Source of the DNA: Piromyces finnis finn
Lineage: Eukaryota > Fungi > Neocallimastigomycota
Reading direction: 5' to 3'
DNA: 64,000 nt
Assembly: GCA_002104945.1 (NCBI GenBank)
Contig: MCFH01000011.1
Span: 930,001-994,000 of the forward strand
Part shown: positions 15,145 to 60,743 of the stretch, piece after piece
How positions within the stretch are numbered: position 1 is the first letter of the stretch
Layout: the number at the start of each line of letters is the position of its first letter
The notes under the pieces: generated by a model
The model's database searches: none
The model's input: only the letters and a program-made list of their open reading frames with translations
Told to the model about the DNA's origin: nothing
Position numbers and translations under genes: made by a program

Positions 15145-15336
15145 CCTTATCTATGTCTTTGATTGGATCATCCACCAAAGGGTCAGAGAATTTTTCTTCA
15201 GAATTTGAAAATTTTTCTGTTTTATGTGAGTCACGTGTTTCATCAACATAAACTTGCTCGTTTATGTTATTGATATTGTGGGTTTGGTTATTATCAATTT
15301 TGGAGTTAGAAGGGGAAGATTGAGAACTTCCCCCAT

Positions 15337-16206: not shown

Positions 16207-16306
16207 ATTTAGTAAATAAATAAGATAATTATACTAAATATACTAATTAATAGGAATTATTTAAATTATCGGCTTTCCCACGGGACGACTGAGGTTCTCC
16301 ACCACT

Positions 16307-16927
16307 TGATAACGGATTGGTAGTTATATTACAACTTTTTAACTACTTCTTCTGTTATCTTATATTGTTTTATCTCGACAGCTATTGTACGAGCTTTAAC
16401 AATATCTACTAGTTTTATTAATTTATTTTAAGCTATTTTATAGTTTTAATAGTTTTATTATTTAATAATATTTATATAGAATAATAACACCAGATTTATT
16501 CTATAAAATATTATTTATTATTAACACAATAATTACAAATTAGACAAGTTTAATTTCGTTTTTATATTTTCTTTTATTTATTGTTCTTACGCTCTTTTTA
16601 ACAATAATTTTTATTATATAAAAACTTATTTTTGTCTTTTTAAATATTATTATGTATTCACTAATTAATTATATTAACTATTATTAAAATTTAACTTATT
16701 ATTAATAATCTAAGTCTTCCTATTTTCTACTAAAAATTATTATTATTCTTTATATTAAAAATTATTTTTATAATTTAACCCAATCAAATATATAAATTTA
16801 TAAAATATTTGATTTTATGTAAATTATATTTTTATAATAAACTATATAAAATTATTTAATAATTATTTTATAATAAAATTTTCTACTAATATCAAATGTA
16901 TAATATATTTATAATTATTATTTATCA
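16307..16927 (-). repeat. 5' LTR of element A
   Basis: Copy of 10352-10972; followed on the minus strand by the PBS. Confidence 0.95.
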
Positions 16928-18897: not shown

Positions 18898-19125
18898 CGT
18901 GACCAAAGATATGAAAAAGAATAATATCAATAATAATACTAATAAATTCTGAAATATTAAATGTTTATAAAAAAAACAGTTTACATTTACTTTTATTTTA
19001 TATTTTCTATAATAATTATAATAATAAAAAAAATAAAAAAAATTAATTATATATATAATCTTAAAATTTGTTATTTCTAAAAAGGGTATTTAAGAAATTA
19101 AAGACTAAATGATTAATATTATACG

Positions 19126-22534: not shown

Positions 22535-23935
22535 AGTGTCTTCGTAAGCTTGCATAAGGCTTTCAAAACTATTATTTATTTTCTTTATTTAATAATAATG
22601 TGAGTTTATCCAACTTTTCTTCTATATTTTTAAATTTTTCTTCATAATTAATTTCTTTTAAGTCTTCTTCATTACTAATTGTAAAATACTAATCTTAAAA
22701 CAGATTATATATTTAACAATAAAACAACTAAACACAAAGATAAAAAAAAGTAAAAGAATATTTTTTATCACAAATTATTACTTTATTAGTAATTGAAATT
22801 TAAAATAACAAACAAAAATTATATGTATTTATATTTTTCCATAATTATATTCTAATATATTATTCTATTTAAATAAACATATATTTAATATAAAATAAAC
22901 AAATCTAATCTAGTTAAATAATAAAATAATAAAGCTAAATTAAAACTAATTCAATATACTTTTAATTCAATTTGAGTTAACTCAAAATTGAATAAAGCTC
23001 AGGTATTATCTATAAATTAATTTAATATTATTAATACTATTCATAATATATTTCCTATTGAAATATAAACAAATCTATTTTTAAAACTAAGTTAAAATTA
23101 TTAAGTTATTCTAAATTTAAATAAAAAAAAGTATAATGTTATTAAATTATTCTAAAATTAAATAAAAAGTATTTAAAAACATTTTGAATATTTAAAATAT
23201 TTGAAATATTTAAATTTATTTAAAATTCTTTTATTCCTTAAACTTAAGTATTTATCTTAATTACGGAAACGGAATTATTATAAAATAATTTACTATTAAA
23301 TTATTCCATAAAATTTATTTAAAATTTTATAATTAATTTTTATAATTAATTTTATTAAGTTTTAATTTATATTTAATAATTAATTATTAATTATTAAATA
23401 ATCTAAAGATACATATTATATCTTTACACTAGTTTTATCATTGAGTGTTTCCAGGTTTTCATTCATTAAATTATCATTTACATTTGAAATGTCTTTTTCC
23501 TTTTTGTCTTTATTGTTATATTCATTACATAACTCCTTAAAGTTATTAGAAGTGAATTCAGTTCCATTATCGCTTCTAAGATATTTTACTTTGGATAATA
23601 GTTCATTGGTTGTTTTATTCAACCAATTTCCAAATTCCTTGAAAACATTACTTTTACTCTTGACAAATATTACCCATCCATATCGACTGTAATCATCTAA
23701 GATACTTAAAAAGTATACATTGTCATGAATTGATGGTGTGATTGGACTTACCAAATCGATGTGTACTATTCCAAAACATTTGATGCTATACTATTTGACC
23801 TTTTATTAGGGATTTCTTTCATTTTGCTTTTCATGTATATTGTACAATTGCGAATATTGTTCTTTTCATCATTATTGTTGAAATTCAGATGCCCAATTCT
23901 TCTTGAAGTCAAGTTTTAAGGAGGGACATCTTGAT
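22535..23935 (-). pseudogene. Ty1/Copia integrase fragment, interrupted by a solo F LTR
   Basis: RRIGH...C..C zinc finger, HIDLVSP, LDDYSRY and LRSDNGTEF motifs; reading frame broken. Span approximate. Confidence 0.8.
22680..23428. mobile_element. Solo LTR, family F
   Basis: tgtaaaatac...tctttaca with near-TSD CTAAT/CTAGT. Confidence 0.8.
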
Positions 23936-29588: not shown

Positions 29589-29670
29589 CGTCAGCTGCAG
29601 GATTTGAACCTGCGCGGGCAGAGCCCATCAGATTTCAAGTCTGACTCCTTAACCACTCGGACAAACTGAC
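29589..29670 (-). tRNA. tRNA-Ser(TGA)
   Basis: Reverse complement GTCAGTTTGTCCGAGTGGTTAAGGAGTCAGACTTGAAATCTGATGGGCTCTGCCCGCGCAGGTTCAAATCCTGCAGCTGACG: anticodon TGA, long variable arm. Confidence 0.95.
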
Positions 29671-29736
29671 TTTATTAATTTTTTTTGTGTAAGAAATATT
29701 AATTATTCATAATTGAATAATTATTATTTCTTATTA

Positions 29737-30770
29737 TGTCACGAATACTAGTGAAATTACAATTTCAAGATCACTTGGAATTGTGAAATCACTTATGAAA
29801 ATTCAAAATCAACAAATATTTTATTTTCAAATAAATTATAAAATTTTATTAAGAAATATTTAAAAATTTAGAAAAGGTTAAAATATGACCTTAACCCTTA
29901 ATAATTTTTATAATAAATAACTTTAACCCTTATCGTTAAAATGGAATAAGAAAAAACACGCGTATCTCCTCAACGAATGACGATTTTTGAATAAAAATAT
30001 TTTGGTTATAATTACGTTCGTTAGAAAGCCACGCTCGAGACAAACAACATATCTTAAAATCATGTCAATATCTCTGCTGGTTCACGAGATATTCCAATTT
30101 AAAGATATTTTGTTAGCAATGATTAATTGTTTATTCAGAGAATGATCACCCCTGATATATCAAACATAAATCATTCACTCAAAGTATAAAAAATTATTGT
30201 TTAATTAAATTAAAATTATTTTCCGGAACTAATTAACTTTATTTTATAATAATTATTTCAATAACATAATTTATAATCTTTGAACTAGAGGATTATAATT
30301 ATTAATATTATATTCAATGAATTATATTATAATTAAGAAATAATTAATATTATGAATATTATAAACAATAGTTATTTTTTAATAATTAGGAATAAGTCTT
30401 AAGTTTAGTTTAAGTATTATAAAATATATTATGAATATAATCATGTATTGAAAAGTTATTTTATTATTAAATGTAAAATTACAAATAGTATAAATAGTTT
30501 AGAATAGTTTTATGAATTAAATCTTTGTAAAGATTATTATCTTATTAATACTTAATAAGTATTACTATTAAATAATCTTATTATTATATATATTCTTTAA
30601 ATAAAATAAAAAGGAATTATTTTAACTATAATACATAATATAATTATTCATTTATAAATCAATTAAGATTATTTTAATAAAACATTTTTTTTTCTAACCT
30701 AGTTATCTTTTAACCTTTTATTTAATTTAATATTTTAATATTAAATTATAAGTTTAGTAAAACTTTTACA
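29737..30770. mobile_element. Solo LTR, family C
   Basis: tgtcacgaatactag...aacttttaca with TSD TATTA. Confidence 0.9.
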
Positions 30771-31400: not shown

Positions 31401-32104
31401 ATAAATACATTTTTCTTTTTAATTAAATAAAATATCCTTCTAATAAATCAGTAATTTAACTAAAAAAACTTACGACCCATTTGACTCTTTGTGTTTGGTT
31501 GTTTATTATAAATCTTTATAATAAACTCGATAAGTTTTATTTTTACTTTCTATTTTCTATTCTAATTTGTTCAATACTTCTTATTTCCGCATAATAATAC
31601 TACAATATTATTCGTTAATATTATTGTAGATAGTAATTTCTGTAAACAATAATAAGAAATTACTACATTTTGTTAAGGAACCAACAAATAATGTTATTCT
31701 TGTCATAATTAATGATTATGACCTAATCCATTATTGTTCCTAAATGTATGAAAACTTTACAATATTCTTATTTGTAAATTAATGTATACACTTAAATTAT
31801 ATTTAAAATTATTAATAATTATTTTTATTGAACTTAAAAATTAATTTAGTAATAATAATATATTGAAAATTATAGTTTATTGAACTTTTAGTTTAATTTA
31901 TCAAGTTAATGAATTTTTATTAATTAAAATTATGAATAATATTTCTGTAAAATAGTAAAATTCTTTAGTTAAATATATTTAAAGTAAACTTTTAATGTAT
32001 GTTAATCAATTTAATAATATGTATAAATATTTATTATAATAGTAATGTAATTTTATTATTCATTTAAAAGTAATTTAAAGACTAAAATTAATGTAAATAA
32101 TTAA

Positions 32105-32892
32105 TGTAAAAGTATAAAATTTAAAACAGATTTCATACTTAAAACAAAACAATTTTTATTAACACAAAAATAAAAAAATAAAACATTAAATTTTTATTTT
32201 AAGAAAACATTTTATTTAAACTCTTAAAAATATTATTAGCTATATAATAGTTAATAATTAAAAAATTGAAAATAACAATTACATCGATTTAACAAATAAA
32301 AATTACATGTATTTATATTTTTTCATAATTATATTCTAATATATTATTCTATTTAAATAAACATATATTTAATATAAAATAAACAAAACTAATTTAATTA
32401 AATAATAAAATAACAGAACTAAACTAAACTAATTCATTATACTTTTAATTCAATTTGAGTAAACTCAAAATTGAATAAAGCCCATGTATTTTCTATAAAT
32501 TAATTTAATATTATCAATACTATTCTTAATATATTTCCTATTGAAATATAAATAAATCTATTTTTAAAACTAAGTTAAAATTATTAAACTATTCTAAATT
32601 TAAATAAAAAAGTATAATCTATTCTAAAATTAAATAAAAAGTATTTGAAAAATATTTTAATTATTTAAAATATTTGAAATATTTAAATTTAATTAAAATT
32701 CTTTTATTCCTTAAACTTAAATATTTATCTTAATTTAAATTTAACGGAATTATTATAAAATAATTTATTATTAAATTATTCCATAAAATTTACTCAAAAA
32801 TTTTATAATCAGTTTTACTAAATATTAATTTATTATTTAATAATTAATAATTAATTATTAAATAATCTAAAGATATATATTATATCTTTACA
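32105..32892 (-). repeat. 3' LTR of the non-autonomous F element
   Basis: tgtaaaagtata...tatctttaca, matches 37429-38216. Confidence 0.95.
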
Positions 32893-35195
32893 ATCTCGCC
32901 CTTTAAGTCGAGCTCCTGCGAGATTATTTTCTTGAAGAAATTTAAATAACAAATGGTTACTACTTTTTCTAAATCATAACATTGTTAAAAAAATATATAA
33001 GTATTTAATTTATTTATACTCTTATTATCATTCTTGTTACTTATACATAATTCTAATAATTTATCTAAAACTTAATCATCAAGAATCCATTTGTTTTTAT
33101 ATTCAGATTATGGTTATTTATAAATTGTTTTCTATTAACATTTTTATTTAAGTATTCAAAACAAAACATTTACTTTAAGTTTCAAATTTTTATTTATTCA
33201 ATTCTTCTTGATCATCATGACTTTTATAATCTTCTTATGCATGATTAAAATTCTATTTTACAATTTTAATACTTTTTATTAATACTTATAGTAATCTGTT
33301 CAACTTTCTTTGGTTTATTAGCTGAAGAAATTTCAATATTAAATTTTAAATTAAATCCATAGTTTGTATAAAATTGAAATTGATTGATTGATTACAATAA
33401 AATATTATAAGTAGATTCCAATATAACAATCAATTCGATTTTATTAACCAACGGAGATATTGGAACAATATCTCGTTCACCCTCTCATTTAAATGAAAAG
33501 TCTGTGATAAAATTTATATAAAATATATCAAACAGGCAATTCTAAAATTATAAAGAAAATAGCATTTAAAGAGTATTAAATGTTTTTTATTATTGTACAA
33601 ACTTTAAACCAAGTGGAACTTTTTTTTTTTTTTTTTTTAAAGGTTATTATTAAGCAAATAAATATAACAAAATTCTTAGTAATAAAATATTTGTAAAAAA
33701 ATTAACATTCATTAATAATAATGGAAAAACATCATTCAATAATTATATTAACTATACCACTATTTTTTTTTAATCTTATTATTAAATAAACAAAAGTGGT
33801 ATCAAGTCATCAAGTAAATACTATAATTTAATTAACAAATTTATCATTTTTAGACATTTTTAAAATACTTTTAGCATATTTATAATTCTCTTTTATTTTA
33901 TAATTTATCAATATATGGTATTATAAAATTATTTCTTTTTTTTAAAAATTTAACAATGAATTCATAAATTTAAATATCATCAATAAAACATCACAGAATT
34001 GATATAAACATATACATAATGTTGTACTAAATATTATTAATTATAAAGTAATTAAAATACTTCATCAAAAGCATCACTTAAAATATTAAAATAGAGCTGA
34101 TACATTTTTGAATAAAAGGTATGATAATAAATTAAAAATGCCATATAAAGATTAAAGCAATTTTAAATTCATCACCTTATTTAATTATTACTAAGCTATT
34201 GATATATTTAAATTTAGTTTAAAAACATATTTTACTCCATTTATCTTATTTATTGATTAAAGGAATATATGAATTTCAATAATTATATCATTTAATTTCC
34301 TACAATCAATATATAGTAATTTTAGTTATCAATCTCATTATACTTCCATTAAAAAGAATTGTATAAAGATTAAAATCTTTTTTTTTTTTTTTTTTTCCTT
34401 TATAAAGTTCGTTTTATTAAGTACATAAAAACTATTCATTTATTAAAAACTCTTATAATTATTATACATATTACATTAATTTATATTTGTTTTATTCATT
34501 ATATTTATTACATTTATCATATTTATTAACTTATTCTATTTATTAATTTATTCTATTTATTACATTTTATTATATTTTTTTTTTCATTTGTTGTATTTAT
34601 TAATTCTATTTTTTTTTTAATTATTATTAATACTAACTATTATATTATCAAATTGTTACTATTACTAAAACTATTCCTCATTAATTTCTATTATAGCTAT
34701 TTCTAATTCTACAATACTAAATGAAATTAAGAACAGATCCAGAATAGATTAATTTTCTAGCTCTGATTTCACTACCATCATATTATTAAGAATAAAAAAA
34801 TATTACACTCATTTCTTATTATATATTTATTTAACTTTATAATTATTCAATCAAAGCTACTATATTAATTTATTCAAGTTATTTGAATCTTTTAAATATA
34901 AAACTTACTTCTTAATAAAAATATAAACTTATTAACTAGATATACAATAACTTCTTTATAATAAATTCAAATCAAATTAAATTTGTGAATTTATTCTACA
35001 ATTATAAGAAATTCTTTATTTAATTAATTTATTTTAATTTATTAATTATAAAAAACATAATTGATTTAACAACTAAATTTGTAAAACCTCCTCATATTGA
35101 ATTCAAATTATTTTAATTATTAATCTTAATCATTTGTTTAATGAATTATTTAATAAACTATTACATTCAAATTATCTTAATTTACGAAATATAAA

Positions 35196-35234
<39 letters not shown>

Positions 35235-35364
35235 AATGTATAACTTTTTAAATAACTAAATTTGTATTGACTTTTGTTGATAAATTCAAATCAAATTAAA
35301 AATGCTTTAAATTTATATTCTAATTATTAAGAATTTTCTATTTAGTCAAATATTCAGTTATATA

Positions 35365-36905
35365 AAATACACATTTATATAAAAGAAGTCAACTCCATCC
35401 TATCAACTGGTGTCAGCGAATTCTTTATAAAGTATAAAACATGTTATTACAATGAAATTAAATTATTTTTTTTTTAAGCTCGTTTTCGTATTACTTCATA
35501 ATATTTTAATATATTATTTAATAAACTTCTTAATTGTATTTATCTAATTTAATTAATAATATATAATCCTTGAATATATTTTATTTAGTTAGTTAGTTAA
35601 TCGAATTTATATTGTATCTTCATATTAAAGAAGTCGACCTGACTCTATCCTTTAAAGAAAAGGTGTCGTCGAGTTCTTTATTTAGTATGAAGTTAAATTA
35701 TTTTAAAAGTGATTTTAAATATCAAATCATTTTCTAACTTCATTAAATAAAATTATATATTTCAAATTTTCAAGTTAAATTAATTTATAGTATTTTCAAT
35801 TTAATTTATTATATACTATTTCCCAAAAAGATGTCGATCTGACTCTGTCCTCTAAAAAGGTGTCATCGAAATCTTATTATAATAAAGAATAATTTATTTA
35901 TTTAACTAACTTTACACATTTATTACTTTTACTTTTATTGTAAAATTTTAATTCATTTCTTAATTTTAATTTATTATATACTATATCTAAAAGATGTCGC
36001 TCAGACTCTATCCTATCAAAAGGTGTCGAGCGAGGTCTTTTAAGTATATAATAAATTCATTTCAAATTTACTTATTATATAATCAAATTTTAATTTGTTT
36101 TAATTATATATTCAATTTAATTTATTATATACAATATCTAAAGATGTCGCTCAGACTCTATCCTATCAAAAGGTGTCGAGCGAGGTCTTTTATAGTATAT
36201 AATAAATTTATTTCAATAAGATAACTTATTCCTCAACTACTTTTAATTAATAAATATCAAAATTTTAATTTTCATATTTCTCAATGTATTTTAAATAAAT
36301 CTAAAATTATTATATACTACGTCTAAAAGATGTCGCTCAGACTCTATCCTATCAAAAGGTGTCGAGCGAGGTCTTTTATAATATATAATAAATATATTTC
36401 AATAAAATAACTTTTTCCAATAAGTGATATTTACATTTTAATTCACTTATTTCTCAATTTCATTTTAATTAATAAATATCAAAATTTTAATTTTCATACA
36501 ATATATTTTAAATAATTCTATAATTATTATATACCATGTTTAAAAGATGTCGCTCAGACTCTATCCTATCAAACGGTGTCGAGCGAGGTCTTTTAAGTAT
36601 ATAATAAGTTCATTTCAAAATAACAATTAATAATTCATTCAAATAAGTGAAATCAACATACTAATTCACTTATTTCTCAATATATTTAAATAATTTTAAA
36701 ATTTTATTAACTTTTTCTTAATTTTCTTTCTTTTTAAATAAGTTTTAATTTTCTTACTTTGCAATTAATTTTTTGATTTAATTTACTCTTTTAATTGTAT
36801 ATATCCAATTTAATTTATAATATACTATGTATAAAAGATGTCGCTCAGACTCTATCCTATCAAACGGTGTCGAGCGAGTTCTTTTTATAGTATATTATAA
36901 TTAAA
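35365..36905. repeat. Array of 8 imperfect-palindrome (hairpin) units separated by AT-rich spacers
   Basis: Cores at 35381, 35627, 35828, 35989, 36140, 36325, 36542, 36833; consensus AAAAGATGTCGCTCAGACTCTATCCTATCAAAAGGTGTCGAGCGAGGTCTTTT, flanked by inverted AATTTATTATATACT/AGTATATAATAAATT. Confidence 0.9.
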
Positions 36906-37004
36906 TTTAATTTTAAAAGAGTTTCATCAATTTAAAAACAAGAGTATTTCATAAATATATTTCTATTAGTATTACAGATAGATTTTATATATAAAGATTT
37001 CATT

Positions 37005-37280
37005 GTTCCATACAGTAGAGTTACACTTATTCCAATTCCAATATAAAAAGGAAAGTTTCACAGAGTAGAAGTTCCACAAGCAAAGTTCCACGAGATTCGT
37101 TCAAAAGAATTCCACGAAGGAAGGATTTCACAAGGTAGTGTTCCACAAGTAGGTAAAAATTCCACAATTATAGTTCCACAAAGTAGTGTTTCACAAAATT
37201 TATTTAGAATTTCACAAAGTAGGGTAACACAAAATTAATGTTACACTGACAGAAGTTACACCATAAATAGTTCCACAAGG
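37005..37280. repeat. About 14 copies of a TT(C/T)CACA-like motif, mostly ~15 nt apart
   Basis: Motif starts at 37056, 37072, 37086, 37110, 37126, 37141, 37160, 37174, 37189, 37210, 37225, 37241, 37256, 37271. Confidence 0.8.
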
Positions 37281-37417
37281 TAGGCTACTCAAGTAGACAA
37301 AAAAAAAATTTCCGAAAAGTTCCAAATTTTCTACGGTAGCAATTCCCAATGTTGTAACTTCAGAAAATAAAAATTGTTTTATTATTAAATATAAAACGTG
37401 TTTTTTAATAAGAAAAG

Positions 37418-37641
37418 GTAATTGTTATTGTAAAAGTATAAAATTTAAAACAGATTTCATACTTAAAACAAAACAATTTTTATTAACACAAAAATAAAAA
37501 AATAAAACATTAAATTTTTATTTTAAGAAAACATTTTATTTAAACTCTTAAAAATATTATTAGCTATATAATAGTTAATAATTAAAAAATTGAAAATAAC
37601 AATTACATCGATTTAACAAATAAAAATTACATGTATTTATA
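37418..37641 (-). promoter_or_regulatory. TATA box, predicted TSS/self-primer and PBS of the F element
   Basis: On the minus strand: TATAAATA (37641-37634), then GTAATTGTTAT (37606-37596), which is perfectly complementary to ATAACAATTAC (37428-37418) directly after the LTR. Confidence 0.75.
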
Positions 37642-38216
37642 TTTTTTCATAATTATATTCTAATATATTATTCTATTTAAATAAACATATATTTAATATA
37701 AAATAAACAAAACTAATTTAATTAAATAATAAAATAACAGAACTAAACTAAACTAATTCATTATACTTTTAATTCAATTTGAGTAAACTCAAAATTGAAT
37801 AAAGCCCATGTATTTTCTATAAATTAATTTAATATTATCAATACTATTCTTAATATATTTCCTATTGAAATATAAATAAATCTATTTTTAAAACTAAGTT
37901 AAAATTATTAAACTATTCTAAATTTAAATAAAAAAGTATAATCTATTCTAAAATTAAATAAAAAGTATTTGAAAAATATTTTAATTATTTAAAATATTTG
38001 AAATATTTAAATTTAATTAAAATTCTTTTATTCCTTAAACTTAAATATTTATCTTAATTTAAATTTAACGGAATTATTATAAAATAATTTATTATTAAAT
38101 TATTCCATAAAATTTACTCAAAAATTTTATAATCAGTTTTACTAAATATTAATTTATTATTTAATAATTAATAATTAATTATTAAATAATCTAAAGATAT
38201 ATATTATATCTTTACA
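37429..38216 (-). repeat. 5' LTR of the non-autonomous F element
   Basis: Copy of 32105-32892; followed on the minus strand by the PBS. Confidence 0.95.
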
Positions 38217-39883
38217 ATTAAAGACTAATTCTTTTAATTAACACTACTTAATTTTTTTTACAAAAAGTATAAAAAGGTGTATATTATAAGAATTAGAGAA
38301 TATACAGATATTTTTATTTTTATTTTTATTTTATTTTATAATTTTATATTAATATCTTAATAAAACAATTTTATCAATAAAACAATTTTTCTTATTTCAT
38401 TTTAATATTATTTTTGAGTATTAATAAATTTATTAATATTTTATAAATAAAAGTAAATTCCTCGAACCGTAACATTTTGATAAATAATGAAATTAATAAA
38501 TATAAAATTATTATTAAACCTGATTTTTAAGTTAACCCTAAAAGTAACTTAAAACAAGTTATAGTTTAAGTACTTTACCAAAATTCTTAAATAAAATTAA
38601 TCCTAAACACTGCATATATTTTGATTATTGAAAGAAAATAATAAACTTTAATTAATCGAGATCAAAATATATAACTTTTGTTAAATTAATTGTTAAATTA
38701 AATATTTAATAACTTCGTTAGTAAATTACACTTTAAAAGTAAACAAATATAATAATTCATGTTATAAAATAATATAATTAAACACCTTTATTAAAACATT
38801 AAAAATAATTATTACTTTAATTAATTGTAAAATAAACAACTTTTTATATTCTTTAACTTTTAATTATTTCTTTTATTGTTATTTCTAATTACTTTTATTA
38901 TTTTTATTGTAAATAGTTATTAATTTTATTGTTTTAATGTAAATAGTTTAAATTTAAAAGAAAATATAAATACATGTAAATATTCTTATTTTAATCATTA
39001 TTATTATTATTAATAAAGAAATATTATATAGTTAGATTAATATTTTATAATTTTAATAATCACTTTTATACTTAAATAAATAAAAATTTTAAATATTTAA
39101 ATATTAGAAAAACAAGTGTTTCTAATAAAACCATTTAGTGTTTTAACAAAACAATTTTATTAATTTTTATAAAAACGATTTTAAATCTTAATCAATATAA
39201 CTTATATAGTTATAACAAAAGATATAATATAATAATCACTTTTTGAAGTAAAATTCAAAATTAAGATTATTATCAAATTATATCAATGGTCCTTCGAACC
39301 GGAGAATCAAAATAAGGTAAATATATAAAATTTTCTTTATATAAAAATTTCATATAGAATAGTAAAATATTCTATGAAATTAATTAAATAATCAAGTTAT
39401 AATAGTATAGAATAGATAGTTAACAGAATAGTTAAATATTCTCAATATTTTATCTATTTAGAAATTATAACTTATTAAATAATAAAATAATATTAAAATA
39501 ATAAATCAATATTCAATATTGAAATATTATTTAAATATTATTAAATCAATATTAAAATAAAATAAATAAATTATAATACTTAATAGTATAGTATTAATAT
39601 AGTAAATTGATATATAAACATTATATATTAGATAAAATATATAGATATTTTAAATAAGAAAAGAATTAAAAAAAAAAAAAAATAGTATAGAAAAATTATT
39701 AGATAAATAGATTGATAATATTATAAATAAGATAGTTGAAAGAATTAATTATAATAATAAAATAGGTATATATACATTAGATATATATACATAAAAATAA
39801 ATATATAATAAAAATAAATCAAAATAATAATAAATAAAGATTTAAGTATATATATATAAAAAATATATATACACCAAACAAAC

Positions 39884-39924
<41 letters not shown>

Positions 39925-41234
39925 ATAAAACTTTATAAATAAAAATACTTGTAAAAATATACTAGGAGCGTATAGAGCTCATATACAGAGTTTCAGTGTA
40001 TAATTAACTAGTTTCAGTTGGTTAGAAACTATAGCTGTTAATCACTGAAGTATTTGTAAAAGTAGGACGAGTGTGAATAGCACGCTTACTTGGGGGAAGG
40101 GATTGTTAGTGTGATAAAAAGCACGCAATACAGGACTCTCAAGTTGAATACTTTAGTGAACTCTGGCGAATAAGGAACTTTAGTCACCGAAGGCTAAAGG
40201 TTTGTCGTGAAGGTAAAGCGACATAAAAATATATAGTTTAAATTTATTTTGAGGTCTAGTATATCACCTCTAGTTAGTAGCTTTTGCCGGTTAATTAAAT
40301 TGTTGTAAGGCACTAAAAAGCAAAAAATAAATCCTGTAAATAAAGTTTTATATTTAATTATTTTTTTTAAAAAAAGAAAAAGAAATACATAAATTAAAGA
40401 TAAAAATTATTTAATAAAAATTATAAAATATAATCATCGGTCAAATAAAATTAAGAGTATTGTTATAAATTTTAAATAATAAAAGCAATAATATTGAGTT
40501 GTCTTTTTAGTTAATTTTCAGCGAAAAATAACTTTTGTTTATCTTTTCGGTTAATTAATTACTAAGATAATTAAAGTGTTTTATAGTAAGTTAGTAAGAG
40601 TGCAGTTTTATCACATATCGTGGGGGAGTAGAGCGCTAACTAATAAGTAAATATTACACCACTTAATATTTATGACGGTTAGTTAGTGGAGGTCGAAAGG
40701 CACGGTGACGAAACTGTCGGGTACTCTGAAGGTACTATAATAACATAATCAATATTATTTTCTGCTTTATAATAAAGAAATAAAAATAAACATCCTACTC
40801 TAAATTAAATATTTTTTTTTACAATACTAATATATAAATAACTTAATATAAATAAAATATATTCTTAACATTTTCTCAAAAAAAAATAAAATCTTCTTAA
40901 TTACAATAAAACTAAAGCAAGTGTCTACAAGTGTTTACAAACAACAACCAATTACTCCTTTTATATTACATTATATAAACGTTATATAAGATTATATTTT
41001 ATTAATAACAGTAATAAATAAAATACCTGTAAATAAAATTATATTATTGTAAATAAAGACTATTGTAAATAAAAACATATTACTGTACTTATAACTAAAT
41101 TATTGTAAATAAAGATTGTTGTAAATAAAAACATATTATTGTTCTTATAACTAAATTATTGAGAATAAATAAAAATTGAGTTTTTAAATAAAATATTAAA
41201 ATAAAATTAAATAAAATAAAAATAAAAAGTAATA

Positions 41235-42203
41235 ATGGATAATACTACTAAAGGTATTACCTTTAATAGAATACCTATTTTGGGTTCAACAAAGGTTGAA
41301 TTTGATGATTGGGAATTTTCTTTTAAACATTGGTGTAATTTATATAAGGTACCAGAACAAGAAAAGTTAGAATACCTTATATCATTAACTACAGGTACAG
41401 CTAGAACAATTGTAGTTAATGCATTAAATAAAGAAACACCAGATGATTATAATACCATCATCAAAAACCTTAAAAGTCATTTTAAAGGTTCAGTACCAAA
41501 GAATTCTAGATTATTAGAATTGTCTACTATTACAATAAAGAAAAATGAAAGTGTATCTGAATTCAATATTAAATTTGACTCTTTAATAAATAAAACAAAC
41601 TTAAAAATGTCAAATGAAATCATATTGTCCTACTATATTAATGCTTTTAGAAACCTTACTAAAACTTACGAAGCACTTTTAGAAGCTGAACCAAAAAGTT
41701 TAGAAGAAGCCAGAAACATTACTATTAAGAAAGAGAAAATTTTCAATATAGTTGAAGAAAATAGACCAAAAATAAGAACTTCCATTAGTTCTAGAAGGTC
41801 TCCAAATGATAATAATGCTCAAAGAAATAATGATAGAGCATATTCAAATAATTTTAATAGTTATAACCGAATGAATAACAATAACACTACTCAAAATAGT
41901 TTTAAAAATTATAATAATAGAAATTATACTAATAACTACAGAAATAATAATTATAATAGTAATATTCAAAATAATAACTACAATAATGATAACAATAATT
42001 ATTCAAGATTTAATAATATTAATCAAAACGTTGAGCAAAGAAAAAGTACCTTAAAATACCCACAAAATAATGATGATGAGTTAAAAGATATAACTCAAAA
42101 GCTTGCGGACCTAAAAATTAATGTTTGCTTAAATTGTAAAAGAATAGGTCATACTACGAATGATTGTCCAGAATTAGATGACGAATACAATCATTTAAAC
42201 TAA
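41235..42203 (+). CDS. gag: Gag of B
   Basis: 322 aa, CLNCKRIGHTTNDC knuckle, ends at T TTA AAC TAA. Confidence 0.9.
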   Translation: MDNTTKGITFNRIPILGSTKVEFDDWEFSFKHWCNLYKVPEQEKLEYLISLTTGTARTIVVNALNKETPDDYNTIIKNLKSHFKGSVPKNSRLLELSTITIKKNESVSEFNIKFDSLINKTNLKMSNEIILSYYINAFRNLTKTYEALLEAEPKSLEEARNITIKKEKIFNIVEENRPKIRTSISSRRSPNDNNAQRNNDRAYSNNFNSYNRMNNNNTTQNSFKNYNNRNYTNNYRNNNYNSNIQNNNYNNDNNNYSRFNNINQNVEQRKSTLKYPQNNDDELKDITQKLADLKINVCLNCKRIGHTTNDCPELDDEYNHLN

Positions 42204-45200
42204 ATAATGGGAGTAAGCAATCTCCCATAAAAACTAAAATTGCAAATAGTTCACAAAATACACAAAAAGCACAAATAAATTCTAATATCTCTAATGAAAA
42301 TAATTATTCTATTAATGCGGCTCAAAAGAAGAAAATAAATGTTAAAACATTAGATAAAAATAAAATATCACCAAATAATAAAAGTATTGTCAAGCCCTCA
42401 ATACTTAACCAACCTAACATTAGGAATTTAAAACAACAAAAGAAGGCTATTAGAGATACTCGTAGAAGAAAAATTAGTGAAGATAAAGATGAAGTTATGG
42501 AAGAAACCCCAAATGAAGAAATAGAAATAGAAAGTGAAGAAGAACAAAATAATACAAATGAAATACCTTTAGAAGAAGTTACTAATACAAAAGAACATAT
42601 CCAACCTATTGAAATTAATAACTCTAATGATTCTACCAATGAAGAAACTTTTAAAAATAATAATGAAACAAGTGATGTAAAAGTAAAGAAAAATTCTGTC
42701 AAAACCAAAGTAACCACAAAAAGAAATATGACAGAAATACAAATGTTAAAAACCAAAGATAAATTTAGTATAATTAAAGAAGCAAATAATTTATATCCAA
42801 AAATAAGTCTTTCCCAATTACTTTCTGCTAGTCCATCACTTAGAAAAGAATTAGAACAAGGATGTAAACCTAAAGTTGAAAAAGTGATGTACTCCTTTAA
42901 TAACTCTAATATTCCATTAATAATTGGTGATATAGATGGAAAATATTTAAAAATTCTTTATGATACTGGCGCAAATGTCAATATCATTACTACAAATGGT
43001 TTTAATAAACTATCAAATAAAAATATTGAAAAAAGTGATGAGGAACAAAATATAACTATTGCTAATGGTACTACTGTTCCTACAAATGTTTTTACTACTT
43101 TAAAAATAAATATTAATAATTGTTGTATTATTTTAGAAAAATTTTATATTATTGAACAAAGTAATCCATACTTTGATATAATTTTTGGAAGAGGTATTCA
43201 AAAGAAATACCGTTTATTTATTGACCCTGATGATGATTATATATACCAGAAAACTAAAAAAGGTTTAAAGAAAATTATCAATAGTAATGATAATGATGCT
43301 AATGATATTCCCTTAATGAATTCTATAATTATTTCAAAAGAAGAAAACCAAGAATTTCAAGATACGTTAAAAGAAATCTTAAATTCAACACCTGATAATA
43401 TTAAATCAAAATTTGAACACATTATAAATAAATATAAAAATTGTATGGCTACATCAATGTCTCAATTAACTACTGCGGATTTAGAACCTCATTCTATAAT
43501 TACTACTACTAATAAACCAATAAAATTAAAACCTTATAAATTATCTAAGGAACATGCTGATATTTTAAAAAGTGAAATTCTTTCATTACTTGATAAAGGT
43601 TTAATTACTCCTTCTCACTCTCCATGGTCATTTCCAGTTTTACTTGTACAAAAGAAAAATGGTAAATGGAGAATGTGTATTGATTATAGAAGACTTAATG
43701 AAATTACTATTAAGGATTCTTATGCACTTCCTTTTATTGATGAATTAATCTCTTCTGTTAATGGTGCAAAAATATTTTATGCTTTAGATTTATATTCTGG
43801 CTACCACCAAATTCCTATGAACCCAAATGATGTGAGAAAACTGCTTTTACAACAAAATTTGGTAATTATAATTTTAAAGTAATGCCATTTGGTTTAACTA
43901 ATGCTCCCGCTACTTTCCAGCGAGAAATGAATAGGATTCTCTTACCATTAATTGGTAAATGTCTTTTTGTTTACATTGATGATATTGTTGTTTATTCTAA
44001 ATCACCAGAAGAACATCTTTATCATTTACAACAAGTTTTTGAAATATTATCTAAATATAATCTTTCTCTTAATTTACAAAAATGTAAATTCTTTCAAGAA
44101 AAGGTAGAAGTACTAGGACATGTACTTACACCTAACGGATTAAAAACTGTTCCTTCTAAAGTTCAAAGTATTGCTTTATGGAATGCTCCAAGAAATGTTA
44201 ATGAACTAAGATCATTCCTAGGTTTAGCTAGTTACTACCGCAAATTTATTCAAAATTTTTCTATTAGAGCAAGCTCTCTTTTTAATTTATTAAAGAAAGA
44301 CCAAGAATATATTTGGTCACAAGAATGTAATAATGCTTTTGAAGATATCCGACAATGTCTATTAAGTGATCCTATTTTAAGTTATCCTGATTTTAATAAA
44401 GAATTTATTATTCGTACTGATGCATCAACTAATGGCATTGGTGCTGTACTCTTACAGGTGGAGGGGGACAAATTGGAACATCTAATTTGTTGTATTAGTC
44501 GTACTTTATCTACTTCAGAAAAGAATTATTCTGTTACTGACCTTGAAGGATTAGCTATTTATTATGCAATTCTACAATTTCGTCAATATATTATAAGTAA
44601 TAAAAATCCTACCATATTAATTACTGATCATAAACCATTACTGGGATTTTATAAAAAGAATATTCCATCAAAAGGTAGACATGCAAGATGGATTGAAGAA
44701 TTTAATAAATATAAAATTGAATTAAAATATGATAAAGGAAAGAAAAATGTTTTTGCTGATGCCCTTTCAAGATTACCTTCTAAAAATTCTGATGAAATAG
44801 TAAATTGTGCTTATGCAATTTTGTCTGATTTTAATCCAAGAGATTTAGACCTACCTGAAGGAATAAAAAAATATTTTACTAAAAATTATCAAGTTGTTGA
44901 TAATACTCTTTATTATAAAAAAGATGAATTATATCTTAAAGTTATTTACAAAGATGAAGATAAAAAAGATATTATTAGTCGTGCTCATTCTGTTGGTCAT
45001 GAAGGTGCTGAAAAGACCACAAATAGAATTTTAAAATCTTATTATTGGCCTGGTATTTGGAATGATGTTAGAATGTGGGTAAAGTCCTGTAGAAAATGTC
45101 AACTTTGTAGACCTAAGCCTTTACCTAAAAATACTGAAGATAATATAACCCCAATTGAACAACCATTTACTAGAGTCGGATTAGATATAGTTGGCCCATT

Positions 45201-46035
45201 ACCACTTACTAAACATGGAAATTCTTATATTATTACCCTTGTTGATTATTTCACTAAATGGGTTGAAGCTAAAGCAATTCCAAATATGAAATCAGAAGAA
45301 GTAATAAAATTTTTAATAGAAGTAATAACAAGACATGGTCCACCAGAAATAATTGTTACTGATAATGGAAGTTCATTTATTTCTGATATTACTAAAATGA
45401 TGATTGATTTATATGGATCATGGGTTCATTTTGTTTCTCCTCATCACCCACAATCTAATGGTATGATTGAGAATAGAAACAAAGAAATAGGAAAAACTTT
45501 AAGACTCTTAATTGAAAATGAATCTGAATGGGATGAATATCTACCATCTGCATTATGGTCACTTAGAACTACCAAAAATTCAAAAACAAAGTTTAGTAGT
45601 TTCGAATTATTATATGGTAGAAGAGACACATGGCCATTAGAAATAATGTTTCCTGATATTTATAAAGATCCTAATGAAACAGAAGAGGAATATATTTTTA
45701 GAAGATTTTTAAGGCATCAAAATTGGGTAAAACAAGCTACTGAATATTCTAATCATGCTAATCAATATTGGGAACATAGAATAGGTTTATCCAAAGCTTT
45801 AAAGAAGACTTATAAACCGGGTGATTATGTTATGATAAGATTAATAGGAAGAAGTAAATTAAATCCTTATTTTTATGGCCCTTATAAAGTTGTTAATAAA
45901 CAAAAATTTAATACTGTTGTACTTGAAGATCCACATACAGGAAAACTACTTGATAGAAATGTACATATTAAAAATATTTTTCCTTACGTTCTACCAGAAC
46001 AAAATTTAACTTCAAGGGACGAAGTTAATTCTTAA
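42200..46035 (+). pseudogene. pol: Pol of B (-1 frame from gag; single frameshift in RT near 43831)
   Basis: The -1 frame is open from the slippery site into ORF 42497..43882 (LYDTGA protease). An apparent 1-nt deletion at gatgt|gagaaaactgct breaks RT; ORF 43882..46035 has YIDD, RNase H and integrase. Confidence 0.88.
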
Positions 46036-46865
46036 AAGGCCGAGAAACTGATAAATGATGAAATTAATAAATATAAAATTATTATTATACCTGATTTTTA
46101 AGTTAACCCTAAAAGTAACTTAAAACAAGTTATAGTTTAATTAAGTACTTTACCAAAATTCTTAAATAAAATTAATCCTAAACACTGCATATATTTTGAT
46201 TATTGAAAGAAAATAATAAACTTTAATTAATCGAGATCAAAATATATAACTTTTGTTAAATTAATTGTTAAATTAAATATTTAATAACTTCGTTAGTAAA
46301 TTATACTTTAAAAGTAAACAAATATAATAATTCATGTTATAAAATAATATAATTAAACACCTTTATTAAAACATTAAAAATAATTATTACTTTAATTAAT
46401 TGTAAAATAAACAACTTTTTATATTCTTTAACTTTTAATTATTTCTTTTATTGTTATTTCTAATTACTTTTATTATTTTTATTGTAAATAGTTATTAATT
46501 TTATTGTTTTAATGTAAATAGTTTAAATTTAAAAGAAAATATAAATACATGTAAATATTCTTATTTTAGTCATTATTATTATTATTAATAAAGAAATATT
46601 ATATAGTTAGATTAATATTTTATAATTTTAATAATCACTTTTATACTTAAATAAATAAAAATTTTAAATATTTAAATATTAGAAAAACAAGTGTTTCTAA
46701 TAAAACCATTTAGTGTTTTAACAAAACAATTTTATTAATTTTTATAAAAACGATTTTAAATCTTAATCAATATAACTTATATAGTTATAACAAAAGATAT
46801 AATATAATAATCACTTTTTGAAGTAAAATTCAAAATTAAGATTATTATCAAATTATATCATTTTC

Positions 46866-49344: not shown

Positions 49345-50088
49345 TATATTAATTAACAAATATAATACGCTTTCCTATTGAAGGCGTAAAGCTAATAATA
49401 TTTATATAAAGAAAATTAAATAATATTTTTATTTTAGCAATAACTTAATATCAGCATATATTAAGTTATTAAAAATATTAAAATTTTTAAAGTTTTAGGT
49501 TTTATATGTAATGGCGACACAGAAAGAATAGATTAGGATATCTATTCTATTACAATAACACTAAATTTAAAAAAAAAATAAAAATTGTTTTATTAAAAAA
49601 TATCTTTTATTATAATAGAAATTTATTAATAACAATTACATCGATCAAAATGATGAAAAATATCTTCTATTTATATTTTTCCTAAGTACAATTATATTAT
49701 ATTATAACTATTTATTTCTTATATATTATTATTTAAAATCTACACTAAAATCTTAATTATTAATAAATATTTAAACTATAACTATTTTTAGTAAAATACA
49801 ATTGGCAATTCAAATTAAGTACCATTCAATTTGAATATGTGCCCATGTATTATTGATATATTAATCATTTATTATTTATATATTATTTATCTATTTCTAT
49901 GAAAAAACAATACTAAAACTAGGGATTTAAATTGAGAATTTTAATTTACTTATTAAACATTAAAAATAAATAAATAATTTATTTTGTTTTAAACTTTAAT
50001 TATTAATAAATAAATTATGTCTCATTTTCTTTTTCTGAATATAATTTGTGTAACTTAAACAATAATACTTGTGGCTTAAGTTACATTA

Positions 50089-53000
50089 TGTAATGAGGTA
50101 TATCTAATGATAAGGGTTAGACTAGAAAATCATTAAGGTTAGATTAATGAAAATTTCATAATTATATTTTTATAACCAATCATTAAGTAATTAATTCACT
50201 TATCAAATTGTATTAAAAAAAAAAAATAATTTTCATGTAAAAAAGAGAGAATAAGAAAGATAAAATAGTTCTTTAGTGTTTTTATTAATAATTAATAAAA
50301 ATTAGTTTTTTTTGTTTCGTCTTTAGTTTGATAATACACTGACCTAGCGAGTTAGTCGTATTATAATAATAAATTTAATAAATAAACATTATTAAAAAAA
50401 AATACATATATATTTGATACATTAGAGTGTGTGTGTTTATTATTATAATATTTCGTTACAATAAAAACACTCTAAGAAAAAGATCACTACCTCAGTGCCT
50501 CGTTTATTTGCTTACTTCTAATTTTTTTTATGGATAACTCTGTTGATTTGAAGAACGGTTTTGATGGCAACCGTCGCTACCTGAAGGGATTCTTAGCCAA
50601 AATGGACATGATCTTTATGATCCATCCTGAAATAGGAAGGGACGATGGAGAAAAGGTCTTCTACGTCGTTAGTCGCCTCTACGGGGATGCAATGAATTGG
50701 GCTGCTACCTTGATTAACAACCATGATCCTTGCTTACAGGATTATGGCGCCTTTGTTGGAAAGCTGAAGGCTGCTTTTGGTTTTCAGGATATGGTCTATA
50801 CTGCCAACCAAAAGCTCAAGAAGATCAAACAACATGGCCTATCCAATACTCAAGAGTATATCAAGGAATTTAACTACTATACCGATGAATCCACTTGGAA
50901 TGAACAAGCCAAGATGGATGCTTTTGTTGATGGGTTGGACGATAGAATCGCCACCCATATCCTTCAGATGTTTCCTGGCCCCTCTACCTTGATAAACTTA
51001 CAAACAATAGCCAGTCGTATAGGAAGTAGATTGGCATGCCACCAAGAGGAAATAAACAGAAGATCCAATAGAAGTTTCCGTTCTAAACAAAGCTTCCAAT
51101 CCCGCTCCTCAGAAAGATCTACAAGTAAATCCACTCAGCCCAAGAAGGAAAATAATTTTGGCCCCATTTCAAGTGAAGAACGTAGCCGCCGAATGAAAGA
51201 GAATCTCTGCTTATATTGTGGTAAACCTGGTCACCGATTATCTGAATGCCCTATTAGAACCAAAAAGGAAAACCATACTAATAATGCTGGGGTCCATGTT
51301 TTGAATGAACAAAAAAAATCCACTCGACTTTCGGATAACTCCTCTTTACCTCAAACTGTTATCGATGTTGATGTTGTTCTTCCATACAAATCTGTCGGAA
51401 CTAAAGTTCTCTTAGATAGTGGTTCACAATTCTGTTTGATAGACCACGCCTTTGTTAAGGCCCATGAGATCCCTATAATTACCAAAGTAAAATGCCCACA
51501 AATTATAGGTATCGGAGGTCACCAAAAGATTATCGGCCAGACTTGGCCTATAACTGTGGAACACATGAATCACTCATGCCAGTTACAATTTTACGTCGTA
51601 GAATTGCCTTCTTACTGTTGTATTCTTGGCTCTGATTGGCTGGCCCTTCACAATCCGACAATCAATTTTGCTAGTAAGGACGTTTCCTATCATTCTGAAT
51701 ACTGTAAGGAAAATTGCTTAAGGAAAGAATCTGCTAGCTCTACCACTTCTGAACTCGAAGACCAATCGAAGGACGAAATGTCAGTTGGAAATACACCTGA
51801 ATACCCTTTCAATGTATTCACTTGTTTAGAAGAACCTGAAGTTGAGTCACCCCAAATTCCAATTCACTACTCTCAACACTCCAAAGTGTTCGAGGAAAGG
51901 CTCGCTGATAAACTCCCTCCTCATCGCACGTACGACTGTGAGATCAACCTGAGACCAAATAGCAACTTGTTTTATGGTCCAATCTACCGACTTACTGAGA
52001 AAGAATCAAAGGTATTAGAAGAAACCATTAATGAAAATTTAAAAAAGGGGTTTATCCGCAAATCCAAATCGCCAGCTGGTGCTCCCGTTCTGTTTGTCCC
52101 GAAGAAGAGTGGAGAACTTCGTATGTGTATCGACTACCGCCGCTTGAACGAAATCACCATTAGGAACTCGTACCCTCTCCCATTGATCCAAGACATGTTG
52201 GATCATCTAGGAAAAGTTAAGGTGTTCTCGAAGCTAGATCTTCGATCCGCCTATAACTTGGTAAGAATCAAAGAAGGCGATGAATATAAGACCGCCTTCA
52301 CCTGTCAATTTGGCCATTTCGAATATCTGGTAATGCCTTTCGGTCTCAAGAACGCTCCTGCAGTCTTCCAACATTTTATTAACGACGTTCTTGGAGGCAT
52401 TATCGATAAATTCGTCTTTTCGTATATTGACGATATTATCATTTTCTCTGATAATATAGCCGAACATCATGAACACGTCAATGAAGTCCTTCGTAGACTC
52501 GAAGAAGCCGGACTGTACGCTAAACTTGAAAAATGTCTATTCGACTCTCCTTGTCTTGACTTCCTTGGTCATAGAATCTCTGCCTCTGGTATCGGAATGG
52601 ACCCTAATAAGGTGAAAGCCATTGCGGAATGGCCGACTCCTAAATCGGTCCATGAACTACAATCTTTCCTAGGCTTAGCCAACTATTATCGTAGATTTAT
52701 TCCTGGCTTTGCTAAGATTGCTCACCCACTCCACCAACTTTGCAAGAAGAACACCGCCTTCGTTTGGAACGATACCGCTCAAGATGCTTTTGATGCTTTG
52801 GTTAAGCATTTTATTAGTCAGCCTATCCTTGCATATCCTGATGTTGACCTACCTTTCGTTGTCGAAACCGATGCAAGTAACTTCGCCATAGGTGCTGTAT
52901 TGTCTCAAGTCAACAAGTCCGACAATATTCTTCACCCTGTTGCGTTCTTTTCTAGATCCCTTACAAACCCGGAGAAGAACTACCCTATCTATGATAAAGA

Positions 53001-55524: not shown

Positions 55525-56466
55525 CATTAAAGATATCAAACAGAGGCGTTTGATATCTTTACATTATAGGAGTTTATAAATTTTATTAACTTTAAGTTAA
55601 AAAATTACTAACGCTAAAGCTTCGTAATTTTTGTCAATTTTTGTTCTTTTTATACATGAACAATTTTAATTATTACAAATTTAAATTTTAATTAATTATT
55701 GTCTAATTATAAAATATTTAATTTTTATAAATTAATAATTAATATAATTATTGTAAATAGTTAATAAATTTAAATTAAAATTTTTAATAATAAAATTTTA
55801 ATAATTTTAAAAAATTTAATAATTTCAAATATTAGAAATTTTATACTTTGAAATTTTTTAATAAAAATTTAAAAAATAAATTTTTTCAAATTTTCAAACT
55901 TTCAAATTTTAAAAAAATTTTTAATTTTTTTCATGTGTCCAAATTTTTTAAATTTTTATAAATGTTATTGTGACACTGCCCGTCCTAAGGCTCGTTTCGC
56001 CGGACGACCCAAAAAATTATGGACACTGGCACGTCATAATAATTTGGACATTGACACTTCCACGACACTTAGAAAAATTTTGAGAATTTCCATTTTTTGA
56101 AAATTCTCAATTTTTGAAAAAAATATATAAGTGTTGAAAAAGTGAAGTGTAAAATTGTTCAAAGAAAAGTTGTGAGGGTATCACGTGGATTCTTCAGAAA
56201 TGGAGACTACACGTGAAGGTTAGGGAAATGATATGACTCGAGGGGAAGCGGATTTTGGGATGCGGAAAAGGTTGCGGAATTTGAGGGTTGAGGGCAAAGG
56301 CGAAAGAGTGTGGTTGGGTAGCGGAATAGTGGTTGGTAGTTGTAGTGGTGGCGACTAGTGGGTAGCGGAGTTGTGGGTAGTAGGTGGGATAGTGGCGATT
56401 GGTGGGTAGTGAAGGAGTAAGGGTGGTAGACACTAGTAGGTGGGGTACTAAAAAGTGGGATCCAGA

Positions 56467-60699: not shown

Positions 60700-60743
<44 letters not shown>

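Follow-up and report, generated by a model that had tools for sequence, protein, structure and literature searches.

A structured leader hairpin of fungal chromoviruses and its eightfold array in a gene-less LTR retroelement of Piromyces finnis

Why should a retroelement without genes carry eight copies of one hairpin? The question is raised by a 64,000-nt stretch of DNA from the anaerobic gut fungus Piromyces finnis of the Neocallimastigomycota (contig MCFH01000011.1 of assembly GCA_002104945.1, positions 930,001 to 994,000). This whole stretch is referred to here as the window, and positions are those of the window unless another contig is named. An earlier note, made from the sequence alone, had described in it an array of eight hairpins of about 90 nt within the leader of a non-coding long terminal repeat (LTR) retroelement, and had proposed several roles for them. 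The hairpin is conserved as a base-paired structure, and it has been retained and multiplied in the non-coding element. Very probably, it is a conserved cis-acting structured element of the retroelement clade to which this element belongs.

Conservation of the hairpin

Eight units lie at 35359-36904, although they are not the equal copies that had been described: five are intact and near-identical, two have diverged yet still fold, and one is dead. All are assigned to the minus strand, along which c8 comes first and c1 last. The intact units are c4 (35968-36058), c5 (36119-36209), c6 (36304-36395), c7 (36521-36611) and c8 (36812-36904, 524 nt past the primer-binding site, PBS, of the element), the diverged ones are c2 (35604-35700) and c3 (35803-35896), the latter having partly lost its outer stem, and the decayed one is c1 (35359-35446). 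Units c2 and c4-c8 each form one long hairpin of -25 to -35 kcal/mol, with minimum free energies on the plus and minus strands of -25.5 and -21.3 kcal/mol for c2 and of -34.7 and -31.0 kcal/mol for c4, while c3 reaches about -14 and c1 -7 to -13 kcal/mol. The fold of c4 has a z-score of -8.0 on the plus and -7.7 on the minus strand, and none of 200 shuffles was equally stable. The succession of helices, mismatch, bulge and loops drawn by the earlier note was reproduced by RNAfold on the plus strand, which is the strand antisense to the RNA of the element.

Within the array, the core GACTCTATCCT (one mismatch allowed) accounts for all seven of its occurrences in the window, where 0.37 are expected. 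Pairwise identity among c4-c8 amounts to 98.1% in the core and 84-88% in the AT-only outer stems, as compared with 68% in the unpaired stretch between outer stem and core and 55-62% in the spacers. Since stems and core are better conserved than spacers of equally AT-only composition, conservation tracks structure. The compensatory examples cited earlier hold for the inner stem (C-G to A-T, T-A to C-G), for changes of T.G into A-T or into T-A, and for a single pair of the outer stem in c8, but the supposed compensation in the outer stem of c2 is a register shift. Uncompensated changes are found in c6 (G>A), in c7 (A.G) and in the top stem of c7 and c8 (A>C). Because five of the eight copies are near-identical, covariation cannot be proved from the array alone, and the evidence that carries the case comes from relatives.

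The relatives were addressed with two covariance models, R1, built from the eight array units, and R2, built from relatives only and without window sequences. Beyond the array, R1 detects nothing strong in the window, its weak match (E = 0.019) at 60617-60692 being antisense to element E, a Ty3/gypsy element on the plus strand with its LTR at 59707-60312 and a gag-pol that runs off the window end. This match corresponds to a single hairpin in the E leader (R2 31 bits, E = 4.6e-5), located 303 nt past the PBS and separated from the gag ATG (60862) by 170 nt, which has the same fold architecture as the array units and aligns with them. In the sense direction it reads GAC-A-[CUGUA..UACAG]-AGAGA-GUC in element E and GAC-A-[CCU..AGG]-AUAGA-GUC in the non-coding element, and the flanks YUCGACAC and AGAGUCUG are identical in both, with compensated stems. 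Over part of its length, the E polyprotein shares 85% identity with a protein of Orpinomyces sp. (JGI Orpsp1_1), a fungus likewise placed in the Neocallimastigomycota, and its identity to proteins encoded on short gut-metagenome contigs is 55-78%. These similarities by themselves indicate an anaerobic gut fungus as the source.

The contigs encoding the closest relatives of E come from gut metagenomes and from misbinned metagenome-assembled genomes (MAGs). Each of them that contains a leader has exactly one hairpin per leader, upstream of gag and matched on the strand antisense to gag. These hairpins lie at 627-718 and 6646-6737 of contig L005 (gag starts at 785 and 6804), 334-421 and 6119-6206 of L006, 6203-6286 of L007/L008, 487-581 of L011, 948-1037 of L012, 260-351 of L013 and 5884-5966 of L014. 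R1 finds them with E-values of 1e-4 to 4e-10; over all model searches of the relatives, E-values go down to 1e-10 to 1e-19. Conversely, R2 recovers c2-c8 with E-values from 2e-7 to 6e-18 (c2, 47 bits, E = 2.5e-9; c3, 40 bits, E = 2e-7; c4, 80 bits; c5, 78 bits; c6, 76 bits; c7, 70 bits) along with the E hairpin, and gives the correct strand a score that exceeds the reverse strand's by 45-55 bits. Unit c1, with 55 bits in R1, is not significant with R2 (E = 0.29). The stem of c2, GTCGAC/GTCGAG, is of the type found in the autonomous elements. The A-type relatives L001 and L002 yielded no such hairpin, and neither did the window elements A, B and C, which are described below.

Pattern scans extend the picture slightly. 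Two metagenome scans with the array's own variant gave no match and two chance matches (L003 and L004, an unrelated repeat), these patterns being too specific for the variant of the relatives. With a family-consensus pattern, the genome-contig collection yielded one true match, the 5.4-kb contig L016, binned as a rumen 'Bacillota' MAG and showing the same hairpin arrangement, and one, L015, that R2 does not match and that is presumably due to chance; the viral-contig collection yielded no match. As a side result, fungal retroelement contigs are deposited in bacterial MAGs ('Bacillota bacterium Tb.RUG.122', 'Erysipelotrichaceae bacterium'), examples being L016 (JAEEHM010000116.1) and protein P0130, and the covariance model marks such misbinned contigs.

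Covariation was assessed in distinct sequences. Among eight distinct relatives, 87.6% of the cells pair, as compared with 64.8% after shuffling (none of 500 shuffles reaches the observed value) and 29-40% when the partners are slid, and 24 of the 35 pairs show double compensatory changes. When c2-c8 and E are included, the 17 distinct hairpins pair in 89.4% of the cells (67.3% shuffled, again with 0 of 500 reaching the observed value; 33-42% slid), double compensation extends to 29 of the 35 pairs, and the covariation score is 0.48 against at most 0.08 for slid partners. The three-pair helix beside the internal loop alone occurs as GAC/GUC, GGC/GCC, AUC/GAU, GUC/GAC and CAC/GUG. These figures bear out the proposal that selection acts on the structure rather than on the sequence. 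On the sense strand, the unpaired positions that do not vary form a U bulge, a 1x5 internal loop (C-A-C / G-ANAGA-G) and, beside CUCG/CGAC, a pyrimidine-pyrimidine mismatch. A K-turn reading of the 1x5 loop was discarded by inspection, because a single A on the non-bulged strand stands in the place of the G-A that a K-turn requires.

In line with the earlier note, the hairpin matches no Rfam family. At the gathering threshold only two tRNAs match in the whole window, and in permissive mode nothing in 32800-37500 falls below E = 1, the chance matches above that value being an Aggregatibacter sRNA and plastid psbJ. The hairpin family, its spread across the fungal chromovirus clade and its eightfold multiplication were found neither in Rfam release 15 nor in the literature searched.

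The gene-less host element

The element that carries the array is delimited by two LTRs of 788 bp with TG..CA ends (TGTAAA..TTTACA), located on the minus strand at 32105-32892 (3' LTR) and 37429-38216 (5' LTR), which match at 788 of 788 positions. Outside each LTR stand the same five nucleotides, ATTAA (32100-32104 and 38217-38221), as a target-site duplication (TSD). The interior comprises 4,536 bp, and its only coding traces are a decayed integrase remnant and a 64-nt pol fragment. The longest open reading frame (ORF), of 76 aa, runs through two hairpins and was rejected as a protein after a search of 1.84 billion proteins returned one spurious repeat-protein match.

The description of the array as lying in the leader of a non-coding element is right, but only since the element lies on the minus strand. 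A plus-strand orientation, suggested by a weak AAGAAAAGG tract, is overturned by integrase collinearity on the minus strand, by a polypurine tract (PPT) at the left LTR and by a self-priming PBS. Regarding the first, collinearity extends over the left LTR, the 93 nt after it and 33196-33490, and the partner is remnant D (19095-20636), which has ORFs for an integrase core and a Tf2-type SH3 domain (PF24626) on the minus strand. The decayed integrase C-terminal remnant of the non-coding element (33196-33504, minus strand) is 70% identical at the DNA level to 20323-20636, is detected by tblastn with residues 1258-1341 of protein P0122 (E = 1e-10), and preserves the motif ERVNEILFQYLR on the minus strand. 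Regarding the second, the polypurine tract AAAGGGCGAGAT directly abuts the left LTR when the element is read on the minus strand, as part of a block (32893-32924, sense ATCTCGCAGGAGCTCGACTTAAAGGGCGAGAT) that adjoins the 3' LTR. This 32-nt block also encloses the tract in a 7-bp stem of its own, ATCTCGC/GCGAGAT.

Regarding the third, an 11-nt stretch directly beside the right LTR (ATAACAATTAC when read on the minus strand) perfectly complements LTR nucleotides 37596-37606, 178 nt from the LTR end. A complement of this length was reached in 20 of 2000 shuffles (1%), and no PBS-LTR complement of at least 8 nt exists in the opposite, plus orientation. This signature, of the Tf1/Tj1 type, predicts self-priming from a PBS at 37417-37428 (minus strand, sense ATAACAATTACC) that abuts the 5' LTR, with a predicted transcript start and self-primer at 37606-37596 and an R-U5 of about 178 nt.

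The minus orientation places the hairpin array in the 5' leader, at 524-2070 nt past the PBS. Along the sense strand, the 5' LTR and the PBS are followed by some 15 short CTACTTGTGGAAC-like repeats with a period of 14-15 nt (37000-37300, from TRF and TTNCACRA matches), by the hairpins c8 to c1, by an A30 tract just downstream of them (35201-35230), by the decayed body, by the PPT block and by the 3' LTR. Matches to TTNCACRA number 27 in the window, and the 10 that cluster in the short-repeat array all lie on one strand. Taken together, the element has the TG..CA LTRs, TSD, PBS, PPT and large internal domain without coding capacity that characterise large retrotransposon derivatives (LARDs). 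By its sequence organisation, it is a very young, gene-less LARD-type derivative of a Tf1-like, presumably self-priming chromovirus. It has lost gag-pol and kept the LTR ends, the self-primer, the PBS, the short-repeat array, the hairpin and the polypurine block, and can thus be regarded as a natural deletion experiment.

Comparison with coding relatives supports this origin. The non-coding element and L005 share the PBS and the nucleotides that follow it, an LTR that is about 70% alike, and both the pol fragment and the remnant of the integrase, and the PPT block is near-identical in L005 (5411-5443), where it stands directly before the LTR, although L005 is otherwise only about 70% similar. 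Hairpin cores of the two are 68-72% identical, the closest among all relatives, and the distance from the PBS to the first hairpin is 524 nt in the non-coding element, as compared with 515 nt in L005. Besides L005, the PBS of the non-coding element recurs in E, L006 and L014; in E it spans 60313-60324 (ACA|ATAACAATTACC), and the self-primer is likewise the same. Short-repeat arrays in the leader are a further common trait, with a homologous array of six copies of CTTTTGGACTGCTACCG in L005 (6482-6587) and similar repeats in E (60350-60470), and could represent single-stranded nucleocapsid sites. Homopolymer tracts also accompany the single hairpins, namely an A42 between the E hairpin and gag (60700-60741) and a T16 before the L005 hairpin (6617-6632).

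The self-priming signature recurs in element E (60313-60324 with 60178-60188, 135 nt from the LTR end) and in element C (11 nt, 50453-50471 with 50275-50285, 186 nt from the LTR end). Three elements of the window hence have an LTR-complementary instead of a tRNA-complementary PBS, a Tf1-type signature in an early-diverging fungus. Proteins of the E clade and of element C carry a chromodomain (PF00385) and a Tf2-type SH3 domain (PF24626). The LTRs of the clade also open with a short terminal hairpin, TGTAAAGAYAT...ATATCTTTA (38196-38216 on the minus strand, 59707-59745 and 55532-55575; 5444-5475 in L005). A weak model match at 55507-55580 proved to be this different hairpin, at the end of an E-type LTR that is interrupted by element C.

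Possible roles of the hairpin and of the array

A gene-less element retains what it needs in cis, and the retention, conservation and multiplication of the hairpin in such an element point to a role in the replication cycle that is independent of gag translation. A structured, covarying element situated between PBS and gag in the 5' leader is also what is expected of a packaging signal. Among the roles listed in the earlier note, that of a multiplied Gag-binding, packaging or dimerisation signal suits the new evidence best, because the coding relatives hold one copy at the equivalent leader position, which the gene-less derivative has retained and increased to eight. A Neocallimastigomycota clade of Ty3/gypsy chromoviruses, Tf1-like and predicted to be self-priming, keeps a single hairpin of about 90 nt between PBS and gag, which, according to this proposal, would act in cis in the genomic (minus-strand-sense) RNA as a recognition site for Gag/nucleocapsid in packaging, as a dimer-linkage site, or as both. 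The 1x5 internal loop, the pyrimidine-pyrimidine mismatch and the U bulge would form the recognition surface, and eight tandem copies would raise the parasite RNA's share of the helper-encoded Gag and virus-like particles (VLPs) that it captures in trans. The chances of a packaging or dimerisation function, and of an adaptive value of the eightfold array, may be put at close to even. The more specific proposal, that the hairpin with its 1x5 loop and pyrimidine mismatch is the Gag-recognition unit of the whole clade and the array an adaptive 'super-packaging' trait, is tentative and may well fail.

Several observations count against the packaging proposal. The multi-hairpin element is represented in the window by a single full copy, accompanied by one solo LTR of 89% identity (22806-23428), and any benefit of eight copies, like the transpositional success of the element, is hypothetical. 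As identity between the LTRs of E and of the LARD reaches only about 70% over some 260 nt, E belongs to a related family and is not necessarily the helper. The alignments behind the pair counts were model-fitted; in an unfitted MAFFT alignment, the inner helices are also found by RNAalifold, and compensation is seen in 9 of 12 pairs. Support for the apical 3-bp stem is weak, its third position being unpaired in 7 of the 17 sequences, and a continuous helix with a U.U mismatch is an alternative there. The apical loops vary and are not consistently palindromic (UUUGAU, AUUA, UAAGUAU and others), so that the hairpin is no classical kissing-loop dimerisation site. Lastly, the stems are almost wholly Watson-Crick, and since G.U pairs (14 cells) are no commoner than A.C (12 cells), the functional strand is unreadable from these counts, which are compatible with use of both strands or of single-stranded DNA.

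The alternative that survives best, though rather unlikely, grants the single hairpin a function and treats the array as a neutral by-product, generated by reverse transcriptase pausing and template switching, or by unequal recombination, at a stable hairpin, without selection on copy number; the same duplication process would then keep the hairpin cores homogeneous. Tandem repeats are frequent in the untranslated regions of LTR retrotransposons. In keeping with this alternative, the spacers are partly homologous in blocks (a 217-nt period with 84% identity over 36224-36694; families D5 and D6), c1 and c3 are decaying, and in the global fold identical units pair with one another as readily as with themselves, as c4 does with c6, which would offer a substrate for template switching and adds to the points against a selected array. 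However, conservation follows the structure and not the duplication unit, given that the outer stems are so much better conserved than the spacers and the internal unpaired stretch, and five copies retain every conserved loop nucleotide of the hairpin family.

An unlikely alternative is that the hairpin is a cis-acting RNA element for another step, either nuclear export or stability of unspliced RNA, in the manner of a constitutive transport element, a signal that gains in effect through multimerisation, or reverse transcription and strand transfer. The conservation, the leader position and the retention in a gene-less derivative serve this alternative equally, and nothing separates it from packaging on these grounds. 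Yet the hairpin resembles no cis-element in Rfam, and the self-priming structure of Tf1 is reported to lie within the first ~90 nt of the RNA (PMC4600332) and not in a hairpin 200-500 nt past the PBS.

It is quite improbable that the functional strand is the one antisense to gag, whether as an antisense transcript or as minus-strand cDNA; the hairpin would then take the form drawn in the earlier note, in which a UCUAU loop and a G.G mismatch accompany a U.G pair. This strand, plus in the window, does fold about 3 kcal/mol better in most units and in 13 of the 17 sequences, which also tells against a sense-strand signal, and the alternative apical helix has a U.G pair where the sense strand has a C.A mismatch. 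Against it stand the near-equal overall counts of G.U and A.C, the only wobble pair of element E, which is on the sense strand, and the fact that only the sense genomic RNA is known to include the leader region, no antisense promoter being known at the leader.

The remaining candidates, that the units are Dicer substrates (hairpin RNAs or microRNA-like RNAs), a new ribozyme, double-stranded DNA sites for a dimeric protein in an enhancer or insulator array, or nested miniature inverted-repeat transposable elements (MITEs), are together very improbable. Stems of about 35 bp do fall in the range of Dicer substrates, but diverged retroelement families themselves conserve the hairpin with its internal loop, mismatch and bulge, which is unexpected for a silencing trigger, and no Rfam microRNA family matches 32800-37500 in permissive mode; cleavage by a ribozyme between PBS and gag would destroy the genome, and the hammerhead/retrozyme, HDV, hairpin, twister, pistol and hatchet models of Rfam give no match in either mode; near-palindromic sequences could bind a dimeric protein, and the leader of Drosophila gypsy carries an array of Su(Hw) sites, but here the stem bases vary freely with pairing kept (five pair types in one helix); and the units, which are tandem with partly homologous spacers, lack the flanking TSDs of MITEs and have homologues at the orthologous leader position in nine coding, autonomous elements.

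Related systems and the surrounding window

Non-autonomous LTR elements and structured packaging signals in leaders are both known in kind; what is new here is the hairpin family, its presence throughout the clade and its eightfold array. Non-autonomous LTR elements keep their cis signals and rely on helper proteins, and LARDs have been reported to specify conserved RNA structures (PMC7215508). With LARDs such as barley Sukkula, the present element has in common its LTRs, PBS, PPT, TSD, large non-coding interior (4.5 kb) and presumed mobilisation in trans. It differs from them in its fungal host, its chromovirus parent, its predicted self-priming PBS and the single full copy seen, and also in that the conserved structure is one defined hairpin, common to coding relatives and multiplied eightfold.

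Other gene-less LTR elements that need a related helper and carry leader signals of the helper type are found in the pairs VL30/MLV and ETn/MusD. To our knowledge, no tandem array of one hairpin is known from VL30 or ETn. In these mammalian, retrovirus-like systems packaging has been shown experimentally, whereas in the present case it is a proposal; the non-coding VL30 RNA is abundantly packaged by MLV (PMC4997597). The packaging and dimerisation signals of Ty1 and of retroviruses likewise reside in the 5' leader, where the hairpins past the PBS, TIPIRT in Ty1 and Psi with SL1-3 in HIV-1, are required in cis and bound by Gag or nucleocapsid at unpaired residues (PMC5454406, PMC7395439). The position of the present hairpin is alike, but it has no sequence or Rfam similarity to these, its loop is non-palindromic, it is accompanied by an array of short single-stranded repeats, and its packaging role is putative.

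The logic of a parasite that multiplies its own signal has a parallel in alphavirus defective genomes, which duplicate the region with the packaging signal. In many RNA viruses, packaging signals are repeated structured motifs, and in single-stranded RNA viruses it is such short repeats that confer selectivity (PMC8206606); here, the carrier is a retroelement, and the array is confined to the parasite, a single copy being present in the autonomous element. Should the proposed role be right, the array would be a retrotransposon counterpart of the defective-interfering RNAs that multiply their own packaging signal, the hairpin would be the first packaging motif defined for a Tf1-like element, and the locus would preserve a sequence record of an arms race between helper and parasite.

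Tf1, Tf2 and Tj1 resemble the present element in having a PBS that abuts the LTR and complements an LTR site taken as the 5' end of the mRNA (PMC4600332), and in an integrase with a chromodomain and a Tf2-type SH3 domain, which here is borne by the relatives; self-priming is here a prediction. [quoted passage not shown] To these matters the locus contributes a compact, covariation-supported RNA element absent from Rfam and a natural dosage series, with one hairpin in the helpers and eight in the parasite, through which competition for packaging becomes testable by hairpin number. It also provides the first map of cis-elements for retroelements of the Neocallimastigomycota. For Tf1 itself, we know of no described hairpin of this kind. 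Retrozymes, too, are non-coding LTR elements with a repeated small structured RNA; theirs are hammerhead ribozymes located in the LTRs, whereas the hairpins described here lie in the leader and match no ribozyme.

The window as a whole is extremely AT-rich, with 12-20% G+C outside genes, and constitutes a nest of LTR retroelements. Besides those already mentioned, it holds the Ty3/gypsy elements A (10351-16927, minus strand), B (38478-46860, plus strand) and C (50089-55531, plus strand, with a chromodomain), as well as copia fragments and several solo LTRs. Element C is inserted in a solo LTR of the E family (49502-50088), which resumes at 55532 after the 3' LTR of C. The leader of element B, about 1.95 kb long (39286-41234), contains tandem repeats of its own at 41043-41169 (56 nt, 2.3 copies), and the pol of this element falls into two ORFs, divided at 43882, despite LTRs that are 99% identical. 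Both tRNA-Ser genes, on the minus strand in the regions 10257-10352 and 29589-29790, have an LTR directly upstream, the LTR of element A beginning some 13 nt away from the 5' end of tRNA-Ser(GCT), while at tRNA-Ser(TGA) an LTR-like repeat begins at a distance of about 60 nt. This placement suggests integration targeted to RNA polymerase III genes, of the kind seen in Ty3 and Tj1. A single clear host gene is present, a long asparagine-rich ORF with a C-terminal SH3 domain, which is located at 2-3499 on the minus strand and runs off the window start.

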